Assembly: GCF_006345805.1 (NCBI RefSeq)
Contig: NC_043009.1
Coordinates: 22,258,001-22,322,000 of the forward strand
From: Octopus sinensis
Taxonomy: Eukaryota
Direction: 5' to 3'
Length of the DNA stretch: 64,000 nucleotides
Below the pieces are notes generated by a model that saw only the letters and a program-made list of their open reading frames with translations, did not search any database and was not told where the DNA came from. A program made the position numbers and the translations under genes. Of the stretch, positions 4,234 to 50,011 are shown in pieces. Within the stretch, counting starts at the first letter, position 1; the number at the start of each line of letters is the position of its first letter.

Positions 4234-7200
4234 AAATAATTAATCGGAAACTGTGCCTTTACAACAAAACAGAAACACAACGAACCAGGAATTTAACAAA
4301 CAAAACATCGCTCGTCTTCGGACAACACGAGGATCCAACATGGCGACCCCCGTCGCCGTACAGATGAATCTACATCCGATCATGAACTGGGACTTGCATG
4401 ATGTCTTAGAAGCATTTAAGAAATTCAAACAGAAAACTCAACTAGCTTTCAAAAGTTTCCTGAAAGGCACAACTGACGATTAGAAGGTAAGCTATATCCT
4501 TTTATGGACGGGCAGTAAAGGTATAGACCTATTCAATAGCTGGGATATGTCAGAATCTGACTGCAATAACCCAGACACACTTTTAGAAAAATTTGAAAGG
4601 CACCTAGAGCCCAGATCGAACCATAGAATTCACAGATACGAATTCCAGGGCCTGAAACAAGACCCACAAGGAATGATTGACAATTTCCTGTCCAGACTAA
4701 AGAATGTTGCCGAAAAATTCAAAGATAAGGACGAAAGAATCGTTGATCAATTAATATGGGGGTGTGCTCATAAAGAAGTTCAGAAATCCCTCATAGGTAA
4801 GGACGCTCTCCAGTTGATAGAAGCAGTAGACACTGCAAGAGCATTCGAAGCTACTACCAAACAAATGGCCTCACTTAGCTTACAAACAAGCTCACTAGGC
4901 AGCAGTGTAGATATTGTATCTAGGCACAGGACAAAACATAGCCGCAAAGAACATGCCAGTACTGTGGTACAGAGCACAATTTCAACAACCGGAAAAAATA
5001 TCCTGCATTCGGTACACACTGCAAAGCATGTGGAAAACTTAACCACTGGGGGAAAATGTGTAGGATAACAAAATCCCAGAAATACAAGCCCCAATTTTCA
5101 AAGAGGAGCGGAAATAGAAGAAGAGATATACATGCCCAAGAACAAAACACCTCAGAGGAGGAATTCTTGGCAGTTGGCACAATAAATGTGCATGAGATGG
5201 GAAATGACGACCAGAAAAAAAATGAGGCATACACGACAATAAGAATACAAAAGAAGTCTGGCAGGAAACAAATAAACATAGTCTTAAGGCTAAAGATTGA
5301 CACTGGAGCCCAGAGTGATATCTTGCCTATCAACCTCTACAAAAAGATGTTCCTAGAACACATGACACAAGAGGATAAAGTCAGAGAAGGAATCCTCACA
5401 CCAAGTGATGTAATCCTCACTGCGTACAGAGGTACCAGGATTCCACAACTGGGCAAAACAACTATCACAGGGACACAAAGGAAAAACAATCAAGTGTTCT
5501 TTTTATGTCACAAGAACAGAAGGACCAGCAATTCTTGGACTCAATACCTGCAAAAAGTTAAATATTGTATCGATCAATGCTGAAGTGAAAGCAGCTCCAA
5601 GCAGGATTGACAGAGATATGCCTATCAAAGATCGACCACAAATCACAAACAAAGAGAAACTGATAAGCATGTACCTTGAATGCTTTGATGATACAGTCAG
5701 GTGCTTTGTGAAATGTCGATATCATATAACAGTCGACGCCAATATCAAACCAATTGTTCACCCACCTCGCCGCGTCCCTCTAGAACTAAAAGAGAAGCCG
5801 AAGACAGAGTTGGACAGAATGGAAAAAAAAGAAATAATCACCAAAGTGATACATCCAACAGATTGGGTGAATTCAATTGTAATCAAGGAAAAACCCAATG
5901 GTACCCTACGGATATGCCTCGACCCAAGGGACCTGAACAAAGCATTAAAAAGAGAGCACCATCCAATTCCAACTCTTGAAGAAATCACACCATCATTGGC
6001 TGGATCCAAATTATTCAGCAAACTGGATGCCAGCAATGGGTACTGGAATGTAAAGATAGACAAAGAATCATCCAACCTCACTACCTTCAACACACCATTT
6101 GGCAGATATCGATTCAACTGACTCCCATTTGGATTGAAGGTGAGCCAAGATGTTTTCCAGCGCCAAATAGATGAGACATACCAAGGCTGCAAGGGAGCAA
6201 TTGGAATAGCAGATGATATCCAAGTGCATGGCAAGGATGAGACCACACATGACTTCAATTTACATGAAGCTATGGAGAAAACCCGACAAGCAGGCATCAA
6301 ACTCAATGCAGACAAGTGTGTAATAAAAGCAAAGGAGTGCAAATTCTTTGGAATTATATACTCTGCAGAGGGAGCTAAACCATACCCCGCTAAAGTGGAA
6401 GCCATCAGAGACATTAAAGAACCCAAAGGCAAGAAGGAACTCAGGAGCTTCCTGGGACTCATCCACTACATGGGAGCCTTCATACCCAAGCTGGCCGATC
6501 ACACTGCAAATCTCCGAGAGCTAAACAAAGATGACGTAGAGTTTGATCGATGTGCTTCACACACACAGGATTTCAAAACAATCAAAACGCTCATCAATAA
6601 GGAGACAACTCTGCAATACTATGACAGACGTAAGCCAGTAACACTCCAAGTCGATGGTTCTATGAGAGGAGTTGGCGCAGCACTGATACAAGAAGGTAAA
6701 CCCATTGCATATGCCTCGAAAGCTCTCTCACCCTCAGAGACAAGGCATGCAAATATTGAAAGGGAACTCGTGGCAGTAGTATATGGATGTGAAAAGTTCC
6801 ATACATACCTGTATGGCAGACATTTCAATATAGAAACAGACCATCGCCTGCTAGAACAAATACATAGAAAAAACCTGACAAAAGCACCAGCCAGACTGCA
6901 AAGGTTACTACTAAGGCTTCGAACATACGACTATGACATCAGGTACAAGCCAGGAAAAGACCTGATATTGGCGGATGCTCTTTCCAGACTATCATCACAT
7001 AATAAACAGGAGATGGAAGGACTAAGCATAAAGGTCCACCACATTATAAATGTGACAACCACAAAGCTAGCAGAAATCAAAGAGGAGACCAGCAAAGATG
7101 AAGAACCCTAGCTCCTTACTCAGACGGTGATTCAGGGGTGGCCAGAAAAGAGACATCAGGTGCAACCCCTAATTCGTGAATATTGGGCCATCCATGATAT

Positions 7201-8534
7201 ATCAGTGGAGACTGGAATCCTGATGGCTGGATCCCGAATAATTATACCCAAGTCAATGCAAAAAGAGATTCTTGACAAGATCCACCAAGGGCATCTAGGA
7301 ATGGAGAAATGCAAGCTCCGAGCCAAGTCAGCAGTATATTGGGTAGGCATGTACAAAGACATAGAAAAGACAGTTTCTACATGCCACATCTGTCAAAAGT
7401 ACAGAAACTCACAACAAAAGGAGGAAATGATATCTAGTGACATCCCAAGAAGGCCATGGCAAACTATTGGAGTAGATCTGTTCAAAGAGGGCCAAGAATG
7501 GTATTTGATAATGGCCTGCTACTACTACAAATTTCCATTTGTGAGTAAAGTGAAAGACCTGACTGCCAAAACAATCACTACAGTGGATCGAGGACTTCTA
7601 GCAGAGCAAGGAATACCAGAGCAGATCATGTGACAAGGGAACCCAGTTCACATCGCAAGAGTTCAAAAAGCTAGCCGATGAGTATGGGTTCAATATTACA
7701 ACCTCATCTCCACACTACCCCAAAGGTCATGGGTTTATAGAAAGACAGGTGCAGACAGTGAAGAGAACACTAGTCAAATGCCGAGAGACTAAGGAAGACC
7801 CACACCTGGCACTTCTGTCCCTGCGAGCGACACCACTGAGAGCTGATATGAAATCCCCAGCAGAATTGTTGAATGGTAGGAAGTACAAAACTACCCTGCC
7901 AACTAAGATCCAACCTCCTATTGACCAAGAAGAGACAAGGGCAAAGCTAGCAGCCACTCAAGAACAATCACAGAAATATTTCAACAAACATGCACAATAT
8001 TTACCTGAGATACTTGGAGGACAACATGTGCATACTCAAGATCCCATAACTAAAACATGGATCCCAGCACAGGTTGTCAGGAGAGCTGAAAATTCAAGAT
8101 ATATATAATAGAAACGGAATCTAGTGGGCAGCTGAGACGCAACAGGGTCCACATCCGCCCAACACCAAAGCTGTCGAGGACAACGTGTACAACACTTGCT
8201 GCATCAGTGACAACACCCACAGAATCATCACCCCAATGGGCACCAACCACCTATCAGCCACCCAACAACACACCTCAGACACCGGTGCGAAGCACAAGAT
8301 CCACCAGATGGAGAAAGAACATCTGCCACCGGTTCGATACCGTTAAAGAAAAAAAAAAGAAAATGAAAAGATAAGTAACTAATTCAGCTAGATTACAAAG
8401 CAGAGGCAGAAGAATCTCACGGTTTCTGCTGTAGGATTGCCACCTCAGGCTGACAATCCATTAGAGTAAGAGAGACTACTCATAATTGTCTTCACTGCCA
8501 AAAGACCCCTTTATTTTTTTTCAAGAAGAAGGGA

Positions 8535-8747: not shown

Positions 8748-9459
8748 ACAATAATTAAGCGACTAAAGTAAACAGCAACATGTGTGTTTGTATGTATGTA
8801 TATAAGCATGTACGTAAAGTCTGGACGATCTTTCGTTTTAACTTGAAAAATCATAACAAAGAACTCGGTAATTTCTGTGACCACGTGTTGTCTTTTCAAC
8901 TGTGATTTGACTTATCAAAACGGCAAGAGAAACATATTACCATATGAAATGTGAGAACACTGAAGCTAAATGGAAACTAAAATGACCTGCGTATGAGATG
9001 GTGAAACAGTTTCTTCAGCTCTGTGAAAACGAACCAAAGAACGTAGGGGAAAAAAAGGACATGTATTTTAACGAAGTGGCAAACAGCTACTCAAATGGTG
9101 TAGGGTTCTTAATAAAGAACATTGTGCTATGATGCTGATTAGTTTCAGAAGTGCCCAAAACCTGGTTTGTAGCACAAGTCTAAAATAATTCTCTAAAAAC
9201 TTGAAGATATCATCAATAAAGAGAGGGAGAGATATATTGTACAAACAAGGTGAGGGGGGATGCACAAATGACTGGGGGTGAGGGGAAGGAATTTTGGTGG
9301 CCTTTCACCACAAATGAGGGAAGGAGCTACCCCTACTTGAATTTGCCAGTTATAACAATACAGTGTAGTACCTTGATAACTACAAAGCATTTCGTACATG
9401 TACTTTGCATGCCCCAATAAATCTTACTGTGAGGGTGGTTTTTGTAATTCATACCATTA

Positions 9460-9660
9460 CAAAAGTGTATCAAACCTGCTTCCTCTCACTCCATTTCTCC
9501 TCGGTGTTTTCCTGGAGTGGGTCATAAATGATGGCAGAACAGTTAACATGAGAAAGACAAACATCACAAACCTAAGATATGCTGACAACATTGATAGGAT
9601 TGGCAGGAAGGAAGGACAGATTGGTCAACTTAGGTAGCCACTTTGATGCAAGCAAATTAG
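9460..9660 (+). mobile_element. Old RTE-type RT fragment in the ZNF intron; copies at ~23090-23290 (+) and ~50560-50760 (-)
   Basis: Translation ...GVFLEWVINDGRTV...TNITNLRYADNID resembles the RTE RT core (GRTITNLRFADDID). Confidence 0.6.
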
Positions 9661-10221
9661 CATGTATTGTATTTATTGTTGTGTATGCAGGTACTTTGAA
9701 AATACCTCATGGAATGATGACCGTGTGCTGCTTAGTAACGGGCTGCTCTTTGACAAGGTACAGGATCTGTTGAGTCACCGTGCCAGCGACGAAGTGAAGT
9801 TAAGGGACTGTAGCATGGTGGATTATGAAGAGTTAACAGAAAAGCTCAGCTGAGCCAATGTTGCTTCTTACATTGAGGCTGAGTGAAGGAATCCCAGAAG
9901 ATCGACAGTCAGAATCACCAAGTTCTATCAAGATAGTAACTGTAATGCATCCAGAGGGGTGACGTCCATGTAATTAGCCAATGAAAGATTCACTATGACT
10001 CAATCTCCCAATTGAAATTCTTAATAATGGAATTGGATGGTGACAGAGAGTCATGGGAGTCTGCAAAAGCTGCATGACCAAAGAGAGTGTATATATTGTA
10101 TGTATCACCTATGCATTGTATATATATATAATATATATATATATATTGTATGTGCATGTGCTGTTGAATCTTTTCACTTTGGCAGTCTTTGATTTCTTAT
10201 ATTCTTTCTCTTTTATTTCAG

Positions 10222-10318
10222 AATAACTGATGATATTGGCAGAAAAGGAATTTTTATATCTGACATCTTCCTTATTCATCTTCTTTGATAGACTAAAGGA
10301 AGCTGTTATACAGAAGAG
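10222..10318 (+). other. Putative 97-nt internal 5' exon of ZNF-1
   Basis: Polypyrimidine acceptor TTCTTTCTCTTTTATTTCAG and donor AG|GTATAA. The same length and boundaries occur in all four genes. Confidence 0.65.
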
Positions 10319-10877
10319 GTATAACCATGTTTATATAAATTGGTGATGAATTATAGTGAAACGTTTCCTCTCTATGAGATTGTCATCAACATTTCTCACA
10401 TTCACTGCTTAATATTTGTAGCAGATTAATTTCATTTGAAATAAGCTTGGATTAAATTACAAAGACACTTTCTGCACCTTCAGATATCAGCAAAGATAAA
10501 AGTTGATAAAAATATAACAAAACAAACTGCTGGTACGTGTAAGTTATAAAATGAGAAATAAGAAAAATATTCCTACAGAGTAGTGAGAGCCAAAAATTAT
10601 GGAAGATTTAATTACATAAGAAAGTTTGAGAGTTGATTTTCTTTTTCTTAATGCCCTTAACATTGAAACCAGCCATACCCTGCCTATATATTCTGACTAT
10701 TTTACAATCAGTACAACAAGATTTGGCCTATCATACCTACCCTGCAATGCCACTCTCAAAAAAATCACATCTTTGAAGTTGCAAACCTATGAGATAATGC
10801 AGGTTTAATTCAAAACAACTTGAATAAAAATAGAATTACAAATAGCAGAGTAATTTGAATACTAAAAGGTTTAAAAG

Positions 10878-12266
10878 ATGCCGAAAGAGGTAGGGAAAAC
10901 ACCATACCAATGTGATATGTGTCAAAAATCGTTCTCTCAAGAACATCACCTTACAACTCACAAATATATTCACACAGGAGAAAAACCATATTACTGTGAT
11001 ATCTGTGGTAAAACATTTCGTCAGAATGTACACTTAATTGTCCACAAACGTATTCATACAGGAGAAAAACCATATCACTGTGACACCTGTGGTAAATCAT
11101 TCGCTACGAAAACAAACTTAATTCGACACAAGCTTATTCATACAAGAGAGAAACAGAATCACTTTGATGTTTGTCGTAAATCATTTCCTTGGCATGCCAG
11201 TGTAGATAAAGACAATCGCACACATACGGGGATGAAACCTTATCGCTGTGATATCTGTGGTAAATCATTCTCTCGGAGTGGTAACTTAGCTAGACACAAG
11301 CACATTCATACGGGAGAGAAGCCATATTGCTGTGATATCTGTGGCAAATCGTTCTCTCAGAATGGTCACTTAGCTAGGCACAATCGCATTCATACAGGAG
11401 AAAAACCATATTCCTGCGATATCTGTGGAAAATCATTCTCTCACAAAACTAACTTGGCTCAGCACCATCACATTCATTCAGAAGAGAAGACATTTCGATG
11501 TGATATCTGTGGTAAATCCTTCTCTCGGAATGACCACTTAGTTGTGCACAATCGCATTCATACAGGAGAGAAGCCATATCGCTGTGATATCTGTGGTAAA
11601 TTCTTCTCTCGGAATGAGCTATTAGCTACGCACAATCGCATTCATACAGGAGAGAAGCCATATTGCTGTGGCATCTGTGGTAAATCATTCTCTCAGAATC
11701 AGCACTTAGCTAAGCACTATCGTATTCATACAGGGGAGAAACCTTATCACTGTGATATCTGTGGTAAATCATTTCCTTGGCGTGCCAATTTAGCTAAACA
11801 CAGTCACATACATACAGGGGAGAAACATTATCACTGTGATATCTGTGGTAAATCATTTGCTTTGAGTGATAGCTTAGCTAAACACTGTCGCATACATACA
11901 GGAGAGAAGCCATATCGCTGTGATATCTGTGGTAAATCATTCTCTCAGAATTATCACTTAACTGCACACAATCGCATTCATACAGGAGAGGAGCCGTATT
12001 GCTGTGATATCTGTGGTAAATCATTCTCCCAGAGTAATAGTCTGGCTAAGCACAATCACATTCATACTGGAAAGAAACCATATTGTTGTGATATCTGTGG
12101 TAAATCATTCTCCCGCAGTGATCACTTAGCTAAACACTATCGTATTCATACAGGGGAGAAGCCATATTGTTGTGATATCTGTGGTAAATCATTCTCTCAG
12201 AATTATCACTTAACTAAACACAATCGCATTCATACAGGAGAGAAGCCATATCCCTGTGATATCTGA
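10878..12266 (+). CDS. Poly-C2H2 zinc-finger protein ZNF-1 (462 aa; 16 finger units, unit 4 degenerate; stop inside unit 17)
   Basis: 28-aa C-x2-C-x12-H-x3-H repeats with TGEKP linkers after a 9-aa leader. No accessory domain in this ORF. Confidence 0.92.
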
Positions 12267-12500
12267 AGTAAATCATTCTCTCAGAATGATAGCTTAGCTA
12301 AACACTGTCACATTCATACAGGAGAGAAGCCATATTGCTCTGATATCTGTGGTAAATCATTCTCTCAGAATTATCACTTAACTAAACACAATCGCATTCA
12401 TACAGGAGAGAAACCGTATCAATGTGATATCTGTGGTAAATCGTTCTCTCAGAATGATTGCTTAGGTAAGCACAGTCAATTTTATTCAGAAGAGAAAATA
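12267..12500 (+). pseudogene. Finger units continuing in frame after the ZNF-1 stop codon
   Basis: GATATC TGA AGT AAA replaces GATATC TGT GGT AAA. The rest of unit 17 and units 18-19 follow in frame. Confidence 0.85.
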
Positions 12501-13423
12501 TTTCAAGCCTTCTACCTAGAGCAGCAAATTTTTTTATGTCAGTTTAACATGTATTTTATTGTATAAAAAAAAGTTCTTTAAGCAAAATTTGGGTGAACTG
12601 ACGAACTATAAGCCATATATAAACAAATATATTGTTTCATTTTCCCTGAGTTTTTTATTGTTGTGCAAATGTAAGTCTTCTTTGTTTAACTAATTCTTGA
12701 GCTTCAGATATTTTACTCTCTTTAAGAAAGAATTACATTTTCAATAATATCATATCAAAAACAAGGTTAAAAGGAAAAAAATCCAGAATCCATAGGCCAT
12801 GGTGCTCCATATATGACTGAAAGACTTCCTCAGGTGGTGCTATTAAGTTACACATGGCCCAGGCCTTACTGGCTGGATCCTATTAGAGTTATCAACATTA
12901 TTGGGAATTTGTGAGTTTGAGTAAAGTAGTTTCACCAACCTCTCAAATTTTAATAGCATTCCCAAGAAAAGTTAGTTTTGACCATTGTAAGTAATTATAT
13001 CTTCACATTTATACCATAATATTTATTAATAAAGTTTTTAGAAAAACTCATGTCTTGTCAACAATTTCTTGTTCTTAAGAAATTATCAATTACTTTGTAA
13101 TACTAAAGCAAATACTACAGTACAACTTCATATGTGGCAAAAGGGCAGTTGAGTTGGCAGAACTAAAGGATCACTGAATTATATTTTTTCTGTATATTTT
13201 CTAAAATAACCTATTCTTAAATATTTTCTAATTCATGGAATTTATGTATCATAGTTGTTTCTATAAAATAGCCATTATTGATATTTTGTTCTTTTTAAAT
13301 TTTATAACTACTATTGATGAGAAATAAAAAAAACATACACTACCATTTGTTTTTTTCTTTCTTCTTACATTCAATATAGAATTTATGTTCACACAAACAC
13401 ACATGATTTTGGTTATTCTTCAG

Positions 13424-16180
13424 CATCATCATTGTTTAACGTCTGCTAGCATGTGTTGGACGGTTTGACTGAGGACTGGCAAACCAGATGGCTGCACCAG
13501 GCTTCACTCTTGATCTGGCAGTTTCTACAGCTGGATGCCCTTCCTATCGCCAACCATGCCGAGATTGTAGTGGGTGCTTTTACGTGACACCAACACGAGG
13601 GCCAGTCAGGCACTACTGGCAATGACCTCGCTTGAATCTTTTTATACATGCCAACGGCACAGGTGCCAGTAAGGCGATGCTGGTAACGATCCCGCTCGAA
13701 TGGTGCCTCCTACATGCCACCAGCACGGAAGCTAGTTAGCTGCTCTGGCAACGATCATGCTCAGATGGTGCTCTAAACACCCTACTAGCATGGGGCACAA
13801 GTGCCAGTAAGGCGAAGCTAGTAACGATCACACTTAAATGGTGCCTTTTATGTGCAGTCGTCTCTCTTGCACACCACATCTGATGCTTCTTAGGTCACAC
13901 TTTTCTCTCAAGGTATTTACACTCTGTCGAGTATGCACACTGACATTAAACATCCATCGGATCATACTGGTTTCATTCCTTGCGAGCTTATGCATGTCCC
14001 CAGCAGTCACAGCCCATGTTTCACTGCCATGTAGCATGGCTGTTCGTACACATGCATCATACAGTCTACCTTTTACTCTGAGCGAGAGGTCCTTTGTCAC
14101 CAGCAGGGTTAAGAGCTCTCTGAACTTTGCCCAAGCTATTCTTATTCTAGCAGCTACACTTTCAGAGCACCCTCCCCGGCTACTGACTTGGTCACCTAGG
14201 TAACGGAAGCTATCAACTACTTCTAGTTTTTCCCCCTGGAATGTGGCAGAAGTTGTTCTCTGCGCATTGTCAGTGTTTATTGCACCTGAGCATCTGCCAC
14301 ATACAAAAGCTATCTTCCCAGTTAGCCTTCCTTTGATATTACTGCACCTCATGTGTCCATAGTTTACACTGGGTATATCTTATAGAGTTTCTACCTACAC
14401 CTCTACTACAGATCAAGCAGGGCCATCTACCTGAAGGGATTTGTGGTTTGCCTGCCTTACTACTTATTAGGAGTTTGGTTATAGCTACATTGACTCTAAG
14501 GCCCTTCGAGTCTAATCCTTGTTTCCACACTTGAAACTTCTCTAGTTCTGAGAGTGACTCAGCAATTAGAGCAAGGTCATCAGCATAGAGGAGCTCCCAG
14601 GGGCATGCTGTCTTGAATTCCTCTGTTATTGCCTGGAGGACTATGATAAATAGGAGGGTGCTGAGGACTGAACCTTGGTGGACCCCTACCTCTACCCAGA
14701 ATTCTTCAGTGTACTCGTTGCCAACCCTCACCTTACTGACAGCATCCTTGTACATGGCTTGCACAGCTCTCACTAACCATTCATCTATTCCTAGTTTCCT
14801 CATTGATCACCAGATAAGGGACTGGGGGACCCTGTCAAAGGCTTTCTCCATGTCAACGAAAGCGAGGTACAGGGGCTTATCTTTGGCTAGGTATTTCTCC
14901 TGCAGCTGTCTTACCAGAAATAAAACATCATTGGTGCTTTTCCTTGGCACGAAACCAAACTGCATCTCATCCAAACTGACTCTCTCCCTAATTAATTGGG
15001 CTATGACCCTCTCCGTGACCTTCATTACCTGATTCAAAAGCTTGATACCTCTGTATCTAAAGCGTCACCTTTACAGAGAGAGGTTTGGAGACACCATAAA
15101 GAAAATGAATGGGAGAAAGAGAGTCTGCCAAATGTCGACCCAACAGAGGGACCAGCTTTGTAGCAGTTGACTATTATGCTGCTACACCAGTCATTGGGTA
15201 TGATTCCTTTGTATATCAACTGGTTAACTATGCGGGTGACTAGGCTATAGCCAACACTGCCAGATATTTTGAGTATCTCTGCAGTAATTCCTGATGGGCC
15301 GGGGGCTTTCCCTGTCTTCATTCTTCTAGTTGCCTTATCTACTAAGGTACTGTCAACTCAGATAGCTGGTCCCTCTGTTGGGTCGACATTTGGCAGACTC
15401 TCTTTCTCCCATTCATTTTCTTTATGGTGTCTCCAAACCTCTCTCTTTGCAGCCCCATTTAGCACAAGAGAACTATCATCCATGCGGACACATTTCTCTC
15501 CTACAACATCTCAATTCTCTATCACACACTGTCTTGCAGCACGAAATGCCTCAAGTCTTTCAGTGCAGAACATTGGCAAATTTTTTCTCATCTGCTTCCC
15601 CTCTGGCTAAGTAAACCTGTCTCCTAGCTTCTCTTCTAGCAGTCTGATACAATTCCCTGCTACCACCGTTCTTCCAGTCCTTCCAAGCCTGTCTCTTTTC
15701 TCTAATAGCCCTGTCTACAACATTGTTTCACCACCATGTTATTTTGGGTCGAGAGGGGACTTTGCACCATCCACAGATCTGGTCAGTGGTTCTCAGCAGG
15801 TTGTCCCGTAGAAACCTCCAGTTGTCTTCTACACTATGTGAAGCTATATCCTCTTCTATTTCGTCAAAGGCTTCGAGTAATATGTCTCTAAATCTCTGTC
15901 CATTTGCAGGATCTTTAAGCTTCCAGACCCCTATTTTCTATGTTGTGGGGTACATTCTTCACCTGGGAAGGTTTTGGCATTTATAAGCAGCCATCTTTCC
16001 CTTTTTCTGGCAAGGATGTAGTCAATTTGGCTAGTATGTCGGCCCAATCGGTAGGTGACTAGGTGACTGGTAGGTTTCCTGAAGTTAGTATTGCAAACCA
16101 TAAGATCATTTGCATCGCAGAACTCCAGCAGCCTGGTTCCCTCCTCTTTGCGGGAACCATAGCCGTAGCCTCCTTCTTGG
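13424..16180 (-). mobile_element. RTE LINE, 5'-truncated and degenerate (endonuclease to 3' tail)
   Basis: Minus-strand pieces give GYGSRKEE/LLEFCDAND (endonuclease), LAFVDMEKAFDRVP, GVHQGSVLS, LLYADD and AMLHGSETW. (GAT)n tail at 13424-13432. The flanks rejoin as in the empty paralogous site at ~31590-31620. Confidence 0.9.
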
Positions 16181-22605: not shown

Positions 22606-23840
22606 ACGACAGTGCATATGTGATGGTGAAGCAGTTTCTTCAGCTCTCTGAAAACGAACCAAAGAACATAGGGAAAAAAAGGACATGCATTTTAACGAAG
22701 TGGCAAACAGCTACTCAAATGGTGTAGGGTTCTTAATAAAGAACATTATGCTATGATGCTGATTAATTTCAGAAGCGCCCAAAACCTGGTTTGTAGCACA
22801 AGTCTGTAAAATAATTCTCTAAAAACTTGAAGATATCATCAATAAAGCGAGGGAGAGATATATTGTACAAACAAGGTGAGGGGGGATGCACAAATGACTG
22901 GGGGTGAGGGGAAGGAATTTTGGTGGCCTTTCACCACAAATGAGGGAAGGAGCTACCCCTACTTGAATTTGCCAGTTATAACAATACAGTGTAGTACCTT
23001 GATAACTACAAAGCATTTCGTACATGTACTTTGCATGCCCCAATAAATCTTACTGTGAGGGTGGTTTTTGTAATTCATACCATTACAAAAGTGTATCAAA
23101 CCTGCTTCCTCTCACTCCATTTCTCCTCGGTGTTTTCCTGGAGTGGGTCATAAATGATGGCAGAACAGTTAACATGAGAAAGACAAACATCACAAACCTA
23201 AGATATGCTGACAACATTGATAGGATTGGCAGGAAGGAAGGACAGATTGGTCAACTTAGGTAGCCACTTTGATGCAAGCAAATTAGCATGTATTGTATTT
23301 ATTGTTGTGTATGCAGGTACTTTGAAAATACCTCATGGAATGATGACCGTGTGCTGCTTAGTAACGGGCTGCTCTTTGACAAGGTACAGGATCTGTTGAG
23401 TCACCGTGCCAGCGACGAAGTGAAGTTAAGGGACTGTAGCATGGTGGATTATGAAGAGTTAACAGAAAAGCTCAGCTGAGCCAATGTTGCTTCTTACATT
23501 GAGGCCTGAGTGAAGGAATCCCAGATCGACAGTCAGAATCACCAAGTTCTATCAAGATAGTAACTGTAATGCATCCAGAGGGGTGACGTCCATGTAATTA
23601 GCCAATGAAAGATTCACTATGACTCAATCTCCCAACTGAAATTCTTAATAATGGAATTGGATGGTGACAGAGAGTCATGGGAGTCTGCAAAGGCTGCATG
23701 ACCAAAGAGAGTGTATATATTGTATGTATCACCTATGCATTGTATATATATATATATATATATATTGTATGTGCATGTGCTGTTGAATCTTTTCACTTTG
23801 GCAGTCTTTGATTTCTTATATTCTTTCTCTTTTATTTCAG

Positions 23841-23937
23841 AATAACTGATGATATTGGCAGAAAAGGAATTTTTATATCTGACATCTTCCTTATTCATCT
23901 TCTTTGATAGACTAAAGGAAGCTGTTATACAGAAGAG
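23841..23937 (+). other. Putative 97-nt internal 5' exon of ZNF-2
   Basis: Identical boundaries and sequence to 10222-10318. Confidence 0.65.
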
Positions 23938-24502
23938 GTATAACCATGTTTATATAAATTGGTGATGAATTATAGTGAAACGTTTCCTCTCTATGAGATT
24001 GTCATCAACATTTCTCACATTCACTGCTTAATATTTGTAGCAGATTAATTTCATTTGAAATAAGCTTGGATTAAATTACAAAGACACTTTCTGCACCTTC
24101 AGATATCAGCAGAGATAAAAGTTGATAAAAATATAACAAAACAAACTGCTGGTACGTGTAAGTTATAAAATGAGAAATAAGAAAAATATTCCTACATATA
24201 TACAGAGTAGTAAGAGCCAAAAATTATGGAAGATTTAATTACATAAGAAAGTTTGAGAGTTGATTTTCTTTTTCTTAATGCCCTTAACATTGAAACCAGC
24301 CATACCCTGCCTATATATTCTGACTATTTTACAATCAGTACAACAAGATTTGGCCTATCATACCTACCCTGCAATGCCACTCAAAAAAATCACATCTTTG
24401 AAGTTGCAAACCTATGAGATAATGCAGGTTTAATTCAAAACAACTTGAATAAAAATAGAATTACAAATAGCAGAGTAATTTGAATGCTAAAAGGTTTAAA
24501 AG

Positions 24503-25891
24503 ATGCCGAAAGAGGTAGGGAAAACACCATACCAATGTGATATGTGTCAAAAATCGTTCTCTCAAGAACATCACCTTACAACTCACAAATATATTCACAC
24601 AGGAGAAAAACCATATCACTGTGATATCTGTGGTAAAACATTTCGTCAGAATGTACACTTAATTGTCCACAAACGTATTCATACAGGAGAAAAACCATAT
24701 CACTGTGACACCTGTGGTAAATCATTCGCTACGAAAACAAACTTAATTCGACACAAGCTTATTCATACAAGAGAGAAACAGAATCACTTTGATGTTTGTC
24801 GTAAATCATTTCCTTGGCATGCCAGTGTAGATAAAGACAATCGCACACATACGGGGATGAAACCTTATCGCTGTGATATCTGTGGTAAATCATTCTCTCG
24901 GAGTGGTAACTTAGCTAGACACAAGCACATTCATACGGGAGAGAAGCCATATTGCTGTGATATCTTTGGCAAATCGTTCTCTCAGAGTGCTCACTTAGCT
25001 ATGCACATTTGCAGTCATACAGGAGAGAAGCCATATTGCTGTGATATCTGTGGAAAATCATTCTCTCAGAAAACTAACCTGGATATGCACAATCACATTC
25101 ATTCAAAAGAGAAGACATTTCGATGTGATATCTGTGGTAAATCATTCTCTCGGAATGATCACTTAGCTAGACACAAGCACATTCATACTGCAGAGATGCC
25201 ATATCGATGTGATATCTGTGGTAAATTCTTTTCTCGGAACGAGCAATTAGCTACGCACAATCGCATTCATACAGGAGAGAAGCCATATTGCTGTGGCATC
25301 TGTGGTAAATCATTCTCTCAGAATCAGCACTTAGCTAAACACTATCGTATTCATACAGGAGAGAAGCCATATTGCTGTGATATCTGTGGTAAATCATTCT
25401 CTCAGAGTTATAACTTAGCTAAACACTATCACATTCACACAGGAGAGAAACCGTATTGTTGTGATATCTGTGGTAAATCATTCTCCCGCAATGATTGCTT
25501 AGCTAAACACTATCGCATTCATACAGGAGAGAAACCGTATTGCTGTGATATCTGTGGTAAATCTTTCTCTCAGAATGATAACTTAGCTAAACACTATCAT
25601 ATTCATACAGGAGAGAAGCCATATCACTGTGATACTTGTGGTAAATCATTCTCCTGCAATAATAACTTAGCTAAACACTATCGCATTCATACAGGTGAGA
25701 AACCATATTGCTGTGATATCTGTGGTAAATCGTTCTCTCAGAATGCTCACTTAGCTGCACACAATCGCATGCATACAGGAGAGAAACCGTATCAATGTGA
25801 TATCTGTGGTAAATCATTTCCTTGGAGTGCCAGTTTAGCTAAACACTGTTGCATTCATACAGGCGAGAAGCCATCCCACTGTGATATCTGA
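24503..25891 (+). CDS. Poly-C2H2 zinc-finger protein ZNF-2 (462 aa; 16 units, units 4 and 6 degenerate)
   Basis: Finger repeats with TGEKP linkers. Units 1-5 are nearly identical to ZNF-1. Unit 6 has CDIF instead of CDIC. Confidence 0.92.
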
Positions 25892-26300
<409 letters not shown>

Positions 26301-27185
26301 CCTTCTACCTAGAGCAGAAAATTATTTTATGTCAGTTTAACATGCATTTTATTATATAAAAAAAAGTCCTTTAAGCAAAATTTGGGTGAACTGACGAACT
26401 GTAAGCCATATATACACTGTGCGAATGTAAGTCTTTGTTTAACTAATTCGTGAGCTTCAGATATTTTACTCTCTTTAAGAAAGGATTACATTTTCAATAA
26501 TATCATATCAAAAACAAGGTTAAAAGGAAAAAAATCCAGAATCCATAGGCCATGGTGCCCCATATATGACTGAAAGACTTCCTCAGGTGGTGCTATTAAG
26601 TTACACATGGCCTAGGCCTTACTGGCAGGATCCTATTAGAGTCATCAACATTATTGGGAATTTGAGAGTTTGAGTAAAGGAGTTTCACCAACCTCTCAAA
26701 TTTTAATAGCATTCCCAAGAAAAGTTATATTTGACCATTGTAAGTAATTATATCTTCACATTTATACCATAATATTTATTAATTAAGTTTTTAGAGAAAC
26801 TCATGTCTTGTCAACAATTTCTTGTTCTTAAGAAATTATCAATTACTGTTACCAATGTCTTTGTAATACTAAAGCAAATACTACAGTACAACTTCATATG
26901 TGGCAAAAGGGCAGTTGAGTTGGCAGAACTAAAGGATCACTGAATTATATTTTTTCTGTATATTTTCTAAAATAACCTATTCTTAAATATTTTCTAATTC
27001 ATGGAATTTATGTATCATAGTTGTTTCTATAAAATAGCCATTATTGATATTTTGTTCTTTTTAAATTTTATAACTACTATTGATGAGAAATAAAAAAAAC
27101 ATACACTACCATTTGTTTTTTTCTTTCTTCTTACATTCATCTTTGCAATATAAAATTTATGTTCAGATAAACACACATGATTTTG

Positions 27186-27800
27186 GGCAGCGTTCCAGCT
27201 TGTGCTTGTACCACTTAAAATTTGCAGAAAAGGCAAACAAGTGTATTCAGCCGTGCAATTTCAAAACTTCGGTAATCTAAATCCGGAGAAGTTGAGCACA
27301 GCATCTTCTTCCTTTTCTCTTCCTACTAATAGTGTATTCTTCATCAAAAATCTGGTGTCGAAGAAATTCTTCATGGTAGACGCCCGTTCTTGTTGTAGCA
27401 TTTGGCCTATTCGTCTCACTGCAGACAAGCCCAAGCGTTCTTCAATTTTTTTGCACGCCACTGACTCGTCAGATTTGCACCCCATCGACTCAGTCAGATT
27501 TCACTACGCCTCGACATTAATCTTCGTCAAGATTTTCAATGGGTTTTCGTCATCTCTGACATCCCGCATCCTATTCCCGGTGCTGATTTCTTGGATCGGT
27601 TTAATCTATTGGTAGATGTCAGCCATCGAAAGCTTTTTGACAGTACTACGTCACTCTCCATGCCGACTGGAAGTTCCACCAATGCGGTTCTTAGACTGAC
27701 ATTTTTTGTTGCCACCTCTGTAGACTTCTTTCATTCTCTTTTGGCTTCATTTCTGGAGCTAGTGGACATTACCTTTCTGCCAGCAAAGCCTACCCACTCG
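27186..27800 (-). mobile_element. Possible BEL/Pao gag fragment
   Basis: Minus-strand RLPKF(EI)...KF/SGTSTSW, across frameshifts, weakly resembles the LPK-EIPKFSG---W motif. It replaces the normal ZNF 3' tail after ACACATGATTTTGG. Confidence 0.3.
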
Positions 27801-27809
27801 ACCATTTTA

Positions 27810-29550
27810 TCACCACCACTGGGTCGCCTGTTTTATTGCGCCTTGCACCTGACCGTCTAAGAATGGCTAGGGCCAAGTTTGAGCACCTGCTCCAACTTGG
27901 CCTAATATGCCCCTCCACCAGCCCATGGGTATCTCCCCTTCATTTCGCGCGAAAAGGGGTGTCTGATTTTCGCCCTGTAGGAAATTATATACGCCTCAAT
28001 GCGGTAACAATATCCGATTGCAACCCAATAAGAAACCTCCAGGACTTTTCGGCCAATCTTCATGGTTGTTCCATTTTTTCAAAAGTCAATCTTATACGCG
28101 CTTATCACTGAATACCAGTCAACCCAGCCAATGTTCCCAAAACTGCGATTACTACCCCTTTTCAGTGTTATGAGTTTTGGTTTGCGGAATGCTACCAGCA
28201 CTTCATTGTTGAGGTTGTCCGTGTTCTTAGATTTTGTGTTTGCCTATGTTGGTGATATGCTCATTTTGAGCAACACCCGTGAAAATCATCTCCGGCACCT
28301 CTCTCAGCTTTTTCAGCGCCTTCGTGCTTATTGTACGCCTCAATCCCCACAAGTGTGTTTTTGGACAATCTTCTCTAGATTTTCTAGGTCATCGTGGAAT
28401 CAGACCTCTGTCGTCAAAAGTCGATGCCATTCAATGCATCGCACCTCCTACTTCCTTGCGCCAGCTCAGGCATTATCTAGGGATGGTCAATTTCTACAGA
28501 CGTTTTATTCCCGGTTGTGCAGATAAGCTACTTCCTCTCATCAAGCTATTAAAGGACACCCCTAGAAAGGATGGTCAAGTCACCCTCTCTGTTAAGGCAC
28601 TGACAGCTTTTGAGTCCATCAAGAAGGATCTAGCTTCTGTTCTTTTGCTTGCACATCCGGTTCCTGGGGCTTCTCTCTCTTTAACTGTAGATGCATTGGA
28701 CACTGCGATTGGCGCTGTGTTACAACACACAGTGGACGATTGTACTTGACCTCTGGCTTTCTTTTCTCGCCAACTGCAACCAGCTGAATGACGATACAGC
28801 ACTTTTGATCGTGAGCTCCTAGCGGTCTATCTATCGGTTCGTTATTTCCAGCATCAACTCAAAGCTCGAGATTTTGTGATCTATACAGATCACAAGCCTC
28901 TTACGTTTGCCCTGTCTTCTAAAATGGACAAACTCTTGCCTCGTGCTTTCCGTCACTTGGATTTTATTTCACAAATTACCAGTGACATTCGTCACATACC
29001 TGGAAAAGAGGACGTTCCTGCTGACGCTCTTTCTCGCCTTCCAGTCTGTTCTCTTTTTTCTCCTGCTGCGATTGACTTAACTCCCATTTCGCAGGACCAG
29101 CCACCTTTGGCGACGTTAGACTTAACTTCGCCTAAGTTCTCCTGTTGCCAGTTTGACTATTTTCCGCTTCCGTCAGCTGAAGGTGCCATTCTTTGTGATA
29201 CTTCCACTGGTTCTCCAGGCCATTCATGCCAGAGAATCATCAACACTCAGTGTTTGAGGCACTGCACTCCTTATCACATCCCGCTACCCTTAAGCTTATC
29301 ACTGCTCCGTTTTTCTGGCCGAATATGCGTCACACTATTACCTCATGGGCATGCACTTGCTCAAAGTGCCAATGGTCCAAGATTCAATGGCACATTCGTA
29401 CCCTGTTTGGACACTTTCCCTCTACGGAGGCCCGTTTTTGCCATGTCCACATTGATCTGGTTGGACAATGGCTTGTGAGACGTGGGTTTCCTTATCTTTT
29501 AACCTGTGTCGATCGCTTCTCCTGTTGGCCAGAAGCCATTCCGATTTCCC
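27810..29550 (+). mobile_element. Decayed Gypsy pol (RT, RNase H, integrase), family A
   Basis: RLAPDRL...SPWVSPLH...FSKVNLIRAYH, YVGD, LTVDALDTAIGAVLQ, YTDHKPL, HIDLVG...WPEAIP; many stops and frameshifts. Confidence 0.85.
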
Positions 29551-29554
29551 GTTT

Positions 29555-29990
29555 CGGAGTTCCATCCAGATTGACTACAAAGCAACTGGCAGAAAGGAAG
29601 AAAAAGGGTTTGCAGATGCTCCCAATGGAAAATGAGTAGCAGAATTGCAAGTATAATCCATGATATTCTCAGCAGGAGCTAGTTGATTTGCCAAAATTGT
29701 TTCCGTCATAGGCACCAAAATGGTCTGAACATTAGGTTGCAGTCTAGAGGAAAAGCGTTGTTTGATCATTACACAATCTGCTGGTGCATTTTCAGCTAGT
29801 TCCTTCATTTGTCTCAATAGCTGTGAAGGCATATGATCAGCAAAGTGTTCATCGTTCACTTATGTGCAAAACTTTTACTCTGCTAATATGGAAGTCCGTC
29901 ACAAAGTCACTGTCTTAACATTGTAATAAGTGGCATCTGATGCTGGGTGGGTAATAAGATGCTTATCTTCTGACCTTCAAGAAGCCTGTT
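29555..29990 (-). mobile_element. Gypsy family A gag fragment, inverted relative to the adjacent pol
   Basis: ORF 29575-29859 (HFADHMPSQLLRQMKEL). Homologous to 18400-18800. Confidence 0.75.
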
Positions 29991-30660
<670 letters not shown>

Positions 30661-32919
30661 GAAAACATTTTAGGCCTTCTACATACAGCAGAAAATTATT
30701 TGATATCAGTTTAACATGTATTTTATTATATAAAAAAAACGAGTTCTTTAAAGAAATTTTGGGGGTTTAGGTTAACTGATGAACTATAAGCCATAAATAC
30801 ACAAATATATTGTTTCATTTTCCCTGTGATTTTTATTGTTGTGCAAATGTAAGTCTTTGTTTAACTAATTCTTGAGCTTCAGATATTTTACACTCTTTAA
30901 GAAAGAATTACATTTTCAATAATATCATATCAAAAACAAGGTTAAAAGGAAAAAAATCCAGAATCCATAGGCCATGGTGCTCCATATATGACTGAAAGAT
31001 TTCCTCAGGTGGTGCTATTAAGTTACACATGGCCCAGGCCTTACTGGCTGGATCCTATTAGAGTTATCAACATTATTGGGAATTTGAGAGTTTGAGTAAA
31101 GTAGTTTCACCAGCCTCTAAAATTTTAATAGCATTCCCAAGAAAAGTTATTTTTGACCATTGTAAGTAATTATATCTTCACATTTATACCGTAATATTTA
31201 TTAATAAAGTTTTTAGAAAAACAATTTCTTGTTCTTAAGAAATTATCAATTACTGTTACCAATGTCTTTGTAATACTAAAGCAAATACTACAGTACAACT
31301 TCATATGTGGCAAAAGGGCAGTTGAGTTGGCAGAACTAAAGGATCACTGAATTATATTTTTTCTGTATATTTTCTAAAATAACCTATTCTTAAATATTTT
31401 CTAATTCATGGAATTTATGTATCATAGTTGTTTCTATAAAATAGCCATTATTGATATTTTGTTCTTTTTAAATTTTATAACTACTATTGATGAGAAATAA
31501 GAAAAAACATACACTACCATTTGTTTTTTTCTTTCTTCTTACATTCATCTTTGCAATATAGAATTTATATTCACACAAACACACATGATTTTGGTTATTC
31601 TTGTTCAGTGTAAATGCTACAGTCAGAAACATTAGTTGCAATAATCCAATTTTCAAATACTAGAAATGATCAGTTAATGAGGAAGTGAAAAACTTAAGCA
31701 ATACATTGATAAAAACAAATGAACAGATTTGGCAGTTTTAGCAGATTCAGTGAAACAGTGTTGTTCACTATACATCTTTGTGGTTGTTGAATGTAATACT
31801 TTTTTCAAAGATCTGAATATTCGTGAATTTTGATTTGATTTGTTTAGTTCAGTATCAAGTCTATCACTGCATCTGTGTGTGTGTGTAAAACAAAAAAAAA
31901 AAAACACAAAGTGGATTTTAAAATGTTTTGGTAGCATTTTATTAATGCAATTTTAAATTACATCATAGCAACATTTTCAGGTAGGCAGGAAGCAAGCTTC
32001 TCACACAGCCATGGGCAAGGAATATGTTTTTATATAAAAAAAAATGTCAACAAGGTTATGGAAGAACGAAGCAAATGTTTAGTAATATCAAGTTGGAGAA
32101 ATGTGCTACTATTATCATACACTGATCATATCTGTTGTGAATTCTATAGTTTATGGTGAGGGTCAGTACAAATGATATGTGTTGTACATGTGGCAGGAGT
32201 ATCTAGCAATCAGATCAGTATATCCAATGTTGTGATTTGCTGGAATATTACCCACATCATTGAAAAAAATCTGACCAATCGAGTCTTTGTGAGGAACCAG
32301 CTACAACAGTAATTTCATCTTTTGGCACTCTTCTCACCAGTCTAACCATTGCTATGTATCCAGTGCACCATAGCTACTTAGACAGATGATGGACAGCATC
32401 TGACCAAGCCAAGCAGACAACACAAAAGCAATGCACACATGGCAAATGAGAGACTTTAGAAGACAGTGGCATGACCAGCAGCTAACCATGATAAGCAAAT
32501 AGTGACAAACACCAGCAAGCATTTCGACTGTTGTATGCGACAAGAACTCAAATCCAAGAAAAATATTAAAACACTCTCGATTTGTCATTCATAGTAATGA
32601 TATTTTTCTTTATAAAAAGAATATTTCGTTTATCAAAAACCTCAACAGATATCAGTGGTTTCTTTGTAACATACAAAATGATAGAAAAATAATTTAAGCG
32701 TAAACCAGGTATATTTAGCATAAAGTGGCTATAGTAGAACACCTTGGATGGTGGAATCACTTGGCCTGTCCATCAATAAAGAGTACAGCTATCCAAGTGA
32801 ACTGATAGAAAATTGCATGACTCAGTGAATACCAACAACTTGGACACACAATGGAGCCCTGGGAACCCACCGGCCCAGAGCACCATCCAGTTCCAAGTGA
32901 AATGTGTGGAGGCACATGA

Positions 32920-36323: not shown

Positions 36324-36842
36324 CTTTTTAATCTTTAAGTATTCAGATTACTCTGTGATTTGTAATGCTTTTTTATTCAAGTTGTTTTGAATCAATTATC
36401 TATTATTTCATAGGTTTGACACTTCAAGGAGTGACATTGCAGAGTAGATATGATAGGACAAATCTCTTTCGTTTGATTGTAAAATAGTCAGAATATATCG
36501 GCCAGATATGGTTGGTTTAAACAAGAAAAAGGAAAATCAACTGTCAAACTTTCTCATACAATTAAGTTTTCCATAATTTTTAGCTCTCACCACTATACAT
36601 ACATGTAGGAATATCTTTCTTTTTTCTCTTTTTATAGCTTGTTCATAACTATTTGTTCTGTTCCATCAACTGTGATCCTGAAGGTGCAGAAAGCGTCTTT
36701 GTAATTTAATCCAAGCTTATTTCAAATGAAATTAATCTGCTACATATATTAAGCAGTGAATGTGAGAAATGTTGATGACAATCTCATAGAGAGGAAACGT
36801 TTCACTATAATTCATCACCAGTTTATATAAACATGGTTATAC

Positions 36843-36939
36843 CTCTTCTGTATAACAGCTTCCTTTAGTCTATCAAAGAAGATGAATAATGAAGATGTCA
36901 GATATAAAAATTCCTTTTCTGCCAATATCATCAGTTATT
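36843..36939 (-). other. Putative 97-nt internal 5' exon of ZNF-4
   Basis: One substitution versus the ZNF-1 exon, with the same AG/GT boundaries. Confidence 0.65.
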
Positions 36940-38944
36940 CTGAAATAAAAGAGAAAGAATATAAGAAATCAAAGACTGCCAAAGTGAAAAGATTCAACAG
37001 CACATGCACATATGTACATACAATATATATATACAACGCATAGCCGATACATACAATATATACTCTCTTTGGTCACACTGCTTTTGCAGACTCCCATGAT
37101 TCTCTGTCACCATCCAATTCCATTATTAAAAATTTGAATTGGGAGATCGAGTCATAGTGAATCTTTCATTGGCTGATTACAAAACCATTGCACAAACAGT
37201 GTGACTTATTGGGGCGTGCAAAGCCAATGTATGAAATGCTTTCTGCTTATAAAAGTATTTTGGCAATACTGTGTTGATAAAACTAGAAAATTCCAGTAGG
37301 TGTAGCTCCTTCTCATTTGTGCATCCCGTTTCACCCTGTTAGTAGAATATATCTTTCTCTCTTTGGTCACGACCTCTTGAAGTTTTAATACAATTTCTTT
37401 ACAGACTTGTGTTAGTGCTACGAACTAGGTTTTGAGCCCTTCTGAAACTAATTGGTATCAGAACACAATGTTTGAGTAGCTGTTTGCTACATTGTTTTTG
37501 CATTCTGTGTTTCTATGTTCTTTGGTCTGTTTTCACCATCTCATATGCTGGTCTTTTTAGTTTCCCTTTAGCTTCAGTGTTCTTACATTTCATATGGCAA
37601 CTGTGATGTTTCCTCTGTCAAAAATCTTTCCTGTCAAGCCACAAGTAGTACACAAACAAAATCAGTTTGGTGGAAGATGAATAACACTATCATTGGCAAC
37701 CCTGGCTACAAGAGATTTAATATAAAGTTGTTGCCTTGTCTGTTTGTCATATACCATCATGGCTTGGTAAACCTGGTAGATCTCCTGGTCTAACAACAGC
37801 TAATTTCTTTCAACTATGTGCCTTGTCCTGATAGTAAAAATAGCAGAGGTGTGGCTGTTTGATAAAAAGTTTGCTCCGCAACCACATTGTTCTGGATTTA
37901 GTCCCATACAAATGTTACTTTTGGCAAGTTGTTTTTTAATATGGCTTCGGGCTGACCAGAACCTTGTGAGTGGATATGGAAGACGGAACACAGATAGATA
38001 GCATAAAAAAGGGTAGAGATTCCCTTGAGACATGAATGATCAAGGGATTGCACCTACAAAGTTCCCCCACTAGGCACAAATCTGGAAACAGCTGTTCCTG
38101 GAAGACCAGCAGTTACACATGCATACCAAACTACCCTCACCTCGTCACTGATGTTTATCTAAGGGAGAGACAAAGGTCGATACAGCTTGGCACCAGTGAC
38201 GTTGCAACTCATTTCTACAGCTGGATGAACAGGAACATCGTGAAATAAAGTGTCTTGCTCAAGAACATGTGTGTGTGTATTTGCGACTATGTTTGTCCCA
38301 CATTACTGGTTGACAACTGGTGTTGATGTGTTTACGTTCCTGCCACCTAGCAGTTCAGCAAAAGAGATTGATAGCAGGCTTTAAAAGAGAAAATAACTAG
38401 CGAGGTCGATTTGACTGTAATTCCTTAAGGTAGTGTCCGAGTATTACTGCACTCTGAATAACTCTATCAAGGAAAAGATGATGCTGTGAAAATTTGTCTG
38501 AGAACTTCTCTTGCCTTGGCTACTGATTTCATTGTAGAAATCATTGCTCTATTGGTGCAATGTTAGCCCAACATGATTTCGCCTTTCAGCTGAAGGTGTT
38601 TGTAACAATAGTGAGAGATTTAGAATATGGACAAGAACCAGATATACCTGTGAAATTATGCCAGTCAAAGGCCAATGTGTAAGCCATCAGCTGTACATAC
38701 TTACTTGCTATGCCTCTATATAGTCCTATATACACACACACACCTATCTACATACACGTATTACCTCTGCATAAAGACTGTTAGATAAACACATACTTTC
38801 GAACATGCTTATATACATACATGCATACAAACGTGTTGCTGTTTACCTTATTCGCTCAATTATTGTTTAAAGGTCTTATGACTGATTTCAAACTCTGCGG
38901 TAAGGAATTGTAGTTTAAAGGTTCGAAAATAAATTTGCCCTTAC

Positions 38945-49387: not shown

Positions 49388-49914
49388 CTTCTTAACCTTT
49401 TACTCTGGTACTTGAAATTCTTTTCCATTCACGTTGTTTTGAATTAAACCTGCATTATCTCTTAGGTTTGAAACTTCAGTAAACTGATTGTTTTCAAAGT
49501 GACTTGCAGGATAGGTATGAGAGAACAAATCTCATTCATTTGATTGTAAAATAGTCAAAATTTAGCTGCTAAAGTGATGAAGAAAAAGAAAATCAACTCT
49601 CAAACTTTCTCATATGATTAAGTTTACCATAATTTTTGGCTCTCACCACTATATAGATATATGTAGGAATATTTTTCATATTTCTCTTTTTATAACTTGT
49701 TCATAACAACTATTTGGTCTGTTCCATCAACTGTTATCTTTGCTGATATCTGAAGGTGCAGAAAGTGTCTTTGTAATTTAATCCAAGCTTATTTCAAATG
49801 AAATTAATCTGCTACATATATTAAGCAGTGAATGTGAGAAATGTTGATGACAATCTCATAGAGAGGAAACGTTTCACTATAATTCATCACCAATTTATAT
49901 AAACATGGTTATAC

Positions 49915-50011
49915 CTCTTCTGTATAACAGCTTCCTTTAGTCTATCAAAGAAGATGAATAAGGAAGATGTCAGATATAAAAATTCCTTTTCTGCCAATAT
50001 CATCAGTTATT
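49915..50011 (-). other. Putative 97-nt internal 5' exon of ZNF-5
   Basis: Identical by eye to the ZNF-1 exon, with the same boundaries. Confidence 0.65.

Follow-up and report, generated by a model that had tools for sequence, protein, structure and literature searches.

Four neighbouring zinc-finger genes with well-diverged finger arrays carry almost the same stretch of DNA upstream of those arrays, and the question is what has kept it alike. The 64-kb stretch of octopus DNA analysed here (the window, to which all coordinates refer) is a C2H2 zinc-finger (ZNF) cluster of four finger genes (ZNF-1, ZNF-2, ZNF-4 and ZNF-5, or Z1, Z2, Z4 and Z5 where pairs are compared) and one truncated copy, set amid the remains of LINE and LTR retroelements. 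A sequence-only reading of this DNA had pointed to a near-invariant exon-intron cassette with a candidate upstream open reading frame (uORF). It left two explanations standing, a conserved uORF or RNA element imposing common translational control on a diversifying family, or a recurrent hotspot of gene conversion. Our analysis makes it likely that the identity of the block stems from recent non-allelic gene conversion of the 5' region within the ZNF family, acting on an old exon that carries an incidental uORF.

A block shared by four zinc-finger genes

The near-identity itself is readily confirmed. The forward-strand segment 10151-10483 shows no difference from ZNF-2 (23770-24103, forward strand), one from the reverse complement of ZNF-5 (49749-50082) and four in 333 positions from the reverse complement of ZNF-4 (36680-37010). 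The copies of ZNF-4 and ZNF-5 lie on the minus strand, an inversion that the sequence-only reading left unmentioned, and a same-strand alignment of all four copies fails (64% mean column identity) because these two are inverted.

The limits of the block needed revision. The cassette had been described as one unit of ~330 bp with far more diverged surroundings; in ZNF-1, ZNF-2 and ZNF-5, however, the adjacent 350 bp upstream are undiverged, and near-identity spans ~9389 to ~10499 by sliding identity, alignment and segment counts. This block of ~1.1 kb takes in a 519-bp indel segment, a TA microsatellite, the exon and the intron (Table 1). ZNF-4 shares 9969-10483, with 10/140 mismatches (7%) in 9969-10110 and 4/333 (1.2%) in the cassette. 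The 97-nt exon, its splice sites, the ATG at 10230 and the second acceptor AG at 10482-10483 are all as originally noted, and we infer that the exon is transcribed and spliced in the four window genes, where it lies ~560 nt upstream of the finger ORF.

Two parts of the block drew separate attention. Upstream of the microsatellite, at 9960-10100, inspection by eye finds TGACGTCC (CRE-like), two CCAAT motifs and a TATATATT motif, so this segment might serve the leader as promoter or first exon. The 519-bp indel was suspected from the motif NLRYADNIDRIG to be a fragment of a LINE reverse transcriptase; this idea was dropped when a Pfam scan and tblastn with the window's own reverse-transcriptase ORFs gave no reverse-transcriptase match in the segment.

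Table 1. Coordinates of the block, its copies, the finger genes and their surroundings, and location of the other clusters compared.
Feature	Position or accession	Strand	Basis or remark
ZNF-1, full near-identical block, common with ZNF-2 and ZNF-5	9389-10499	+	~1.1 kb; sliding identity, segment table
Cassette first flagged, 333 bp	10151-10483	+	Part of block with 98.8% identity to ZNF-4; alignment
TA/TG microsatellite within block	10111-10150	+	Copies differ in length; bounds the most similar ZNF-4 tract on the left
519-bp indel	9450-9968	+	Direct repeat TGTAATT at both ends; in ZNF-1, ZNF-2 and ZNF-5, absent from ZNF-4
ZNF-1 leader (5' non-coding) exon, 97 nt	10222-10318	+	Acceptor TTTCAG/AATAAC, donor /GTATAACC
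uATG of ZNF-1	10230-10232	+	Weak initiation context (C at -3); spliced uORF stop TAA 10497-10499
Intron, 165 nt	10319-10483	+	Conserved like exon; acceptor CTTCAG/ at end (AG 10482-10483)
ZNF-2 block copy	23015-24119	+	Exon 23841-23937, uATG 23849
ZNF-4 block copy, shorter	36678-37181	-	Exon 36843-36939, uATG 36931-36929
ZNF-5 block copy	49734-50829	-	Exon 49915-50011, uATG 50003-50001
ZNF-1 finger ORF, 462 aa	10878-12266	+	Start MPKEVGK; in-frame TGA inside finger, further fingers beyond
ZNF-2 finger ORF, 462 aa	24503-25891	+	
ZNF-4 finger ORF, 543 aa	34692-36323	-	Annotated as single-exon CDS in GCA_951406725.2
ZNF-5 finger ORF, 445 aa	48050-49387	-	Frameshifted relative to rest of own array
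5'-truncated ZNF copy	~29991-31602		86% to ZNF-1 11811-13420; without leader exon
Retroelement-like ORFs	4547-7633; 60-1543; 13834-14803; 53486-54724; 28062-29639; 41542-42638; 58985-59749		By eye
Clusters L002, L004, L007	OX597842.1		
Clusters L005, L009	OX597840.1		
Cluster L008	OX597819.1		
Cluster L003	O. sinensis		
Locus L010	O. bimaculoides		

The leader exon in the wider octopus ZNF family

Short octopus ZNF fragments, obtained in a profile search with the 58-aa N-terminus, served as handles to other clusters, of which ~190 kb were compared. BLASTN recovered diverged matches (68-74%) to three islands of the region upstream of ZNF-1, the exon among them. An exon profile built by iterated nhmmer from the exon and ~30 nt on either side then identified 23 copies, distributed over four O. 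vulgaris chromosomes and O. sinensis, all but one of them upstream of ZNF reading frames (22 of 23). In the nine copies with an annotated downstream gene the exon lies ~220-430 nt upstream of the CDS. The single 807-aa ZNF at the O. bimaculoides locus L010, the one locus of that species in the comparison, has no exon copy, and neither does the Logan contig L006 (1260 nt).

Of 22 scorable copies, 20 retain the acceptor AG, and most copies keep the donor GTATAA. Models from two independent annotations use this very site: the last coding exon of O. sinensis P0121 starts exactly at the leader acceptor (...HT/E-stop, L003 19164-19168), as does that of O. vulgaris P0130 (NITSC-stop, L008 16169-16186). 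Because the splice sites are conserved and two paralogue models use the same acceptor, the 97-nt element very probably represents an authentic leader exon that is old and found throughout the family, which indirectly supports the earlier claim of a real exon in the block. The acceptor that precedes the large finger exon in L002 and the second acceptor at 10483 are homologous. Identity of the leader exon between subfamilies is 48-76%, and its column conservation (0.71) is no better than that of its intronic flanks (0.73 and 0.67).

The annotations in these clusters show further peculiarities. P0121 (L003 10001-19168) and P0130 (L008 10001-16186) start in the finger exon of one gene, leave it by splicing within a finger linker and finish a few codons inside the leader exon of the next gene; these models are read-through or chimeric, of a kind that may be common in octopus ZNF clusters. 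The model P0122 (MSSDNLKRKRNN..., L002 10001-10839 and 1358-2196, forward strand) starts antisense to the leader-exon copy of a neighbouring minus-strand ZNF, which reflects either a head-to-head arrangement or a spurious model. In subfamily B (L002 9760-9385, minus strand) a tandem duplication lies directly upstream of the finger-exon acceptor. The homologue of the duplicated unit in the window genes, 10724-10874, comes after the acceptor-like site 10483, and the leader has therefore been rearranged between subfamilies.

Divergence steps and mosaic histories

The comparison of gene pairs inside and outside the block shows a contrast far beyond chance. Z1 and Z5 differ at 3 of 1055 positions in the block (microsatellite excluded) vs 84 of 512 in the non-coding flanks (p=4e-39); Z1 and Z4 differ at 4 of 333 positions in the cassette vs 64 of 346 in the downstream non-coding flank (p=6e-16). 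Outside the block the same pairs show 14-27% non-coding divergence. Within it, identity is indifferent to the class of feature. The mismatches of the ZNF-4 cassette are spread over exon (1/97), intron (3/165) and the 71 nt upstream (0/71), with no difference between exon and non-exon positions (3/236 in the latter; p=1). The intron differs from that of ZNF-5 at a single position (1/165), and the 519-bp indel segment of Z1 and Z5 at 1 of 520.

The groupings of the genes change along their length. ZNF-5 goes with ZNF-1 and ZNF-2 in the block and in the indel; in fingers 1-3 ZNF-1 is closer to ZNF-4 (34/283 mismatches) than to ZNF-5 (71/283). The block of ZNF-5 is as near to that of ZNF-1 as is the block of ZNF-2, though ZNF-1 and ZNF-2 are a young 13.6-kb tandem duplicate, and sites 10012 and 10416 group the copies in conflict with each other. 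The longest concordant run between Z1 and Z5 is significant by permutation (p=1e-4), in a Sawyer-type test whose power is low here, the block being almost free of polymorphic sites. Since the assembly is made from ONT reads polished with short reads, and such polishing may erase paralogue-specific variants, the counts of 0-1 differences are perhaps slightly exaggerated; the loss of a few variants could not create a 20-fold step in divergence.

Similar behaviour is seen in a second subfamily on another chromosome. At L005 and L009, loci 3 Mb apart, exon and leader are 94-100% identical, compared with 75-85% in the fingers. An orphan exon copy of this subfamily, with no zinc-finger ORF within 3 kb downstream, has 1 mismatch in 96 positions between flanks of 73-82% identity. 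Subfamilies B and D consist of uniformly young duplicates and are uninformative here.

The sharp step in divergence, the equality of exon and intron, the inclusion of an indel and a microsatellite and the mosaic groupings together point to ectopic conversion and not to constraint on a frame of 30 codons; the conversion hotspot that had been offered as the second explanation is thereby favoured, with conversion as the inferred mechanism. The flagged block would then be the 5' part of each gene, comprising the 97-nt leader exon, the next intron and, in three of the genes, ~830 bp upstream. The exon would be old and family-wide, and its near-identity among the four neighbours recent. Non-allelic gene conversion, or an equivalent ectopic recombination, would have copied one paralogue's 5' region over that of another, in one tract of ~1.1 kb joining ZNF-1 and ZNF-2 with ZNF-5 and in an older or shorter tract of ~0.3-0.5 kb involving ZNF-4, and the flanking intron or leader and the finger arrays would have kept their 15-25% divergence. 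Long-term constraint could not account for 99-100% identity in an exon so variable between subfamilies.

Fate of the upstream open reading frame

The uATG stands in a poor context for initiation. A purine at -3 is the rule for good initiation context; the uATG has C at this position and the main ATG has A. If the stretch from the second acceptor to the main start is exonic, it adds 6-9 further ATGs, so that the uATG would be at most one of several generic, leaky uORFs in the leader. The spliced product had been predicted to end in RYQQR followed by a stop. This is correct for ZNF-1, ZNF-2 and ZNF-5, which read MILAEKEFLYLTSSLFIFFDRLKEAVIQKRYQQR and then stop; the frame of ZNF-4 ends differently (44 aa, ...KRITVDGTEQIVMNKL and stop) because of an 11-nt deletion directly after the second acceptor. 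The substitutions TCC>TCA (10271, ZNF-4) and CAA>CAG (10493, ZNF-2) are indeed synonymous in the uORF frame. An exact look-up of the unspliced 38-aa uORF and of an antisense 56-aa ORF found nothing on record.

Following the frame through the family changes the picture drawn from the window. An ATG at the homologous site occurs in 13 of the 23 copies, namely in subfamily A (the window), subfamily B (L002/L007) and four of five subfamily-C copies; the other ten have CTG or ATC, a deletion, or a shifted acceptor there. With scores of 0.57-0.71, the ATG columns do not exceed the median of the exon columns. Exon lengths of 97, 98, 94-96 and 89 nt differ by non-multiples of three, and the subfamily peptides (MILAEKEF..., MTSASQDF..., MKLAKKYF...) are unrelated past ~10 residues. 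Subfamily C has a T-run whose length of 4, 5 or 6 alters the frame, and in one of its copies codon 7 is a stop. The visible differences among the four predicted subfamily-B peptides are all amino-acid changes; two of these copies (L002a, L007a) read in frame into the finger ORF and two stop early. From the two in-frame copies one might suspect that the exon ATG is the ancestral start codon, an idea rejected as a general rule in view of the stops in their two sister copies; the recurrence of the start M-x-(K/E)-E directly before the first finger in subfamilies A and C and in three O. sinensis genes counts against it as well.

RNA structure offers no substitute for the peptide. Rfam gave only sub-threshold matches, on the TA repeat, and folding against shuffled sequences revealed no extra stability (z=-0.32 for the exon, z=-1.36 for the cassette). 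Covariation, which had been proposed as a route to a conserved structure, yields nothing either, as RNAalifold on ten diverse copies predicts 0 pairs. The sequence-only reading had named loss of the ATG or frame among paralogues, and identity explained by recent conversion, as findings that would count against its regulatory interpretation. With only 13 of 23 ATGs retained, indels of 1-2 nt, unrelated peptides, and exon and intron equally conserved in ZNF-4, both are what we find. On sequence evidence, the uORF is incidental and not a conserved regulatory device, and a tempting false lead is removed.

Selection, insertion or conversion

Direct purifying selection on the block, through a uORF that acts by its peptide or position or through a structured RNA controlling ZNF translation, is most improbable. 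It could draw on the homologous ATG in three subfamilies, on the two in-frame substitutions in the window being synonymous and on the in-frame reading of two subfamily-B copies; yet two synonymous changes are expected by chance in some 5-10% of cases (a rough estimate, not a computed one), and the lost ATGs, inconstant exon lengths and unrelated peptides, the codon-7 stop and frameshift among close paralogues, the different end in ZNF-4 with an intron as conserved as the exon, the pyrimidine at -3 with further ATGs behind it, and the lack of an Rfam match, fold stability or consensus pairs all weigh against it. Independent arrival of the block at each gene, as a young mobile or captured element or as a very recent segmental duplicate, is also very unlikely, and so is an artefact of assembly or polishing. 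Copies in both orientations and an indel of 519 bp flanked by a 7-bp direct repeat would suit an element, and short-read polishing can homogenise close repeats. The block was not inserted independently, however, because both of its flanks are homologous (75-85%) among the genes and it occupies the same relative position in each. Moreover, 9389-10150 has no other copy in the window or in the ~190 kb of other clusters, a diverged version of the exon part sits at the same place throughout the family, Pfam and reverse-transcriptase searches gave no match, and polishing is unable to turn ~80% identity into 100%.

A third possibility, which we regard as unlikely but less so than the other two, accepts conversion as the mechanism and lets selection pick the surviving tracts and their ends, such that the 5' module is kept uniform within a ZNF subfamily for a shared regulatory input and the arrays diversify. 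Its best arguments are the occurrence of the 5'-block pattern in two independent subfamilies on different chromosomes and the right edge common to two tracts, since the two window tracts stop at the second acceptor with their edges, 10483 and 10499, no more than 16 nt apart; the CCAAT-, TATA- and CRE-like motifs seen by eye at 9960-10100 would also fit. Against it, homogenisation has extended over an indel segment and a microsatellite and has also reached an orphan exon copy that lacks a ZNF downstream, tract lengths are unequal (1.1 kb, 0.5 kb and 0.18 kb) and the module is weakly conserved between subfamilies (48-76%). If selection did act in this way, dozens of genes with different DNA-binding arrays would receive one transcriptional and translational input, and the shared 5' module, made up of promoter-proximal DNA, a leader exon with a weak uATG and the first intron, would be the non-coding counterpart of the KRAB exon in vertebrate clusters. 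Conversion by pure chance, for its part, does not predict the shared tract edge and the recurrence in a second subfamily; either selection or a homology barrier is needed in addition, and the candidates for such a barrier are the indels just downstream of the second acceptor. The recurrence may reflect conversion that sustains itself at high identity and halts at these indels. Recent gene conversion with an incidental uORF thus stays our preferred explanation, and concerted evolution of this kind, affecting the 5' regions of tandem ZNF genes, is ordinary gene-family evolution, not the new regulatory system that had been suspected.

Relation to known systems

The pattern resembles concerted evolution in tandem clusters such as those of vertebrate KRAB/C2H2 ZNF genes in several respects. 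Close paralogues occur in both orientations, divergence switches abruptly from ~0-1% to 15-25% within a gene pair and leaves a mosaic history, identity ignores the boundaries of exon, intron and indel, and the modules that contact DNA diverge as another part of the gene stays uniform. In contrast to the KRAB/C2H2 clusters, the part homogenised here is a non-coding 5' region and not an effector-domain exon such as KRAB.

The gene structure invites a related comparison. KRAB-ZNF genes have short non-coding leader exons and carry all fingers in one large 3' exon; similarly, the octopus leader, a short 5' exon with canonical splice sites, precedes by a few hundred bases the one large exon that holds the start codon and all the fingers. 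The octopus family differs in having no effector-domain exon between leader and finger exon, and in that the leader ATG of subfamily B can be in frame with the finger ORF. Well-known uORFs with a conserved peptide or regulatory role include those of GCN4/ATF4, the MAGDIS peptide of AdoMetDC and the plant bZIP uORF under sucrose control. Like these, the octopus frame is short, opens with an ATG in a leader exon 5' of an ORF for a transcription factor and ends before the main start. Unlike them, its start codon, length, frame and peptide vary among homologues, its context is weak and the leader may hold several other upstream ATGs.

An old leader exon, missing from the current CDS annotation, is thus present in many octopus ZNF genes, and these genes evolve in concert in their 5' regions as their finger arrays diverge. 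Dating of ZNF duplications and inference of selection in cephalopod clusters call for caution, because divergence estimated from the 5' region would be far too low. Homogenisation has been proposed for cephalopod protocadherin arrays (PMC9068888), and rearrangement and conversion of ZNF genes have been noted (bioRxiv 10.1101/2022.11.29.518450). The papers searched cover the expansion of octopus ZNF genes as well as conversion in other clusters of cephalopods; neither the leader exon nor the block is described in them.

The finger genes and their surroundings

The recorded gene for the ZNF-4 protein has a single exon and lies on OX597826.1, in the chromosome-level Octopus vulgaris assembly GCA_951406725.2. 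A cluster-membership look-up found none of the four window ZNF proteins, and protein searches with full ZNF-1 and with a conceptual subfamily-B protein that included the exon-1 peptide gave matches dominated by vertebrate KZFPs. The public annotation appears to fuse the truncated copy and ZNF-2 (~24692-31655) into one gene model of 669 aa.

As a tandem duplicate, ZNF-1 (8988-12496) and ZNF-2 (22613-26121) are 94% identical overall and mosaic in detail. The 5' region, like the first and last fingers, is ~100% identical; the middle fingers, where the alignment has gaps, reach 73-90%. This mosaic suggests exchange or shuffling at the level of single fingers. Both genes have a stop inside a finger (TGA 12264-12266 in ZNF-1, 25889-25891 in ZNF-2), where CDI-stop-SKSF replaces CDICGKSF, and finger units continue downstream. 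ZNF-5 has a frameshift at about 48050-48131, which leaves ZNF-4 with the only uninterrupted array. Such interruptions possibly reflect birth-and-death decay or, for the frameshift of ZNF-5, an assembly indel. The spaces between the ZNF genes are filled by ORFs that by eye resemble gag/pol and integrase of LTR retrotransposons and LINE reverse transcriptase. A perfect inverted repeat of 83 bp lies at 15075-15157 and 15364-15446, with ~200 bp between its arms.
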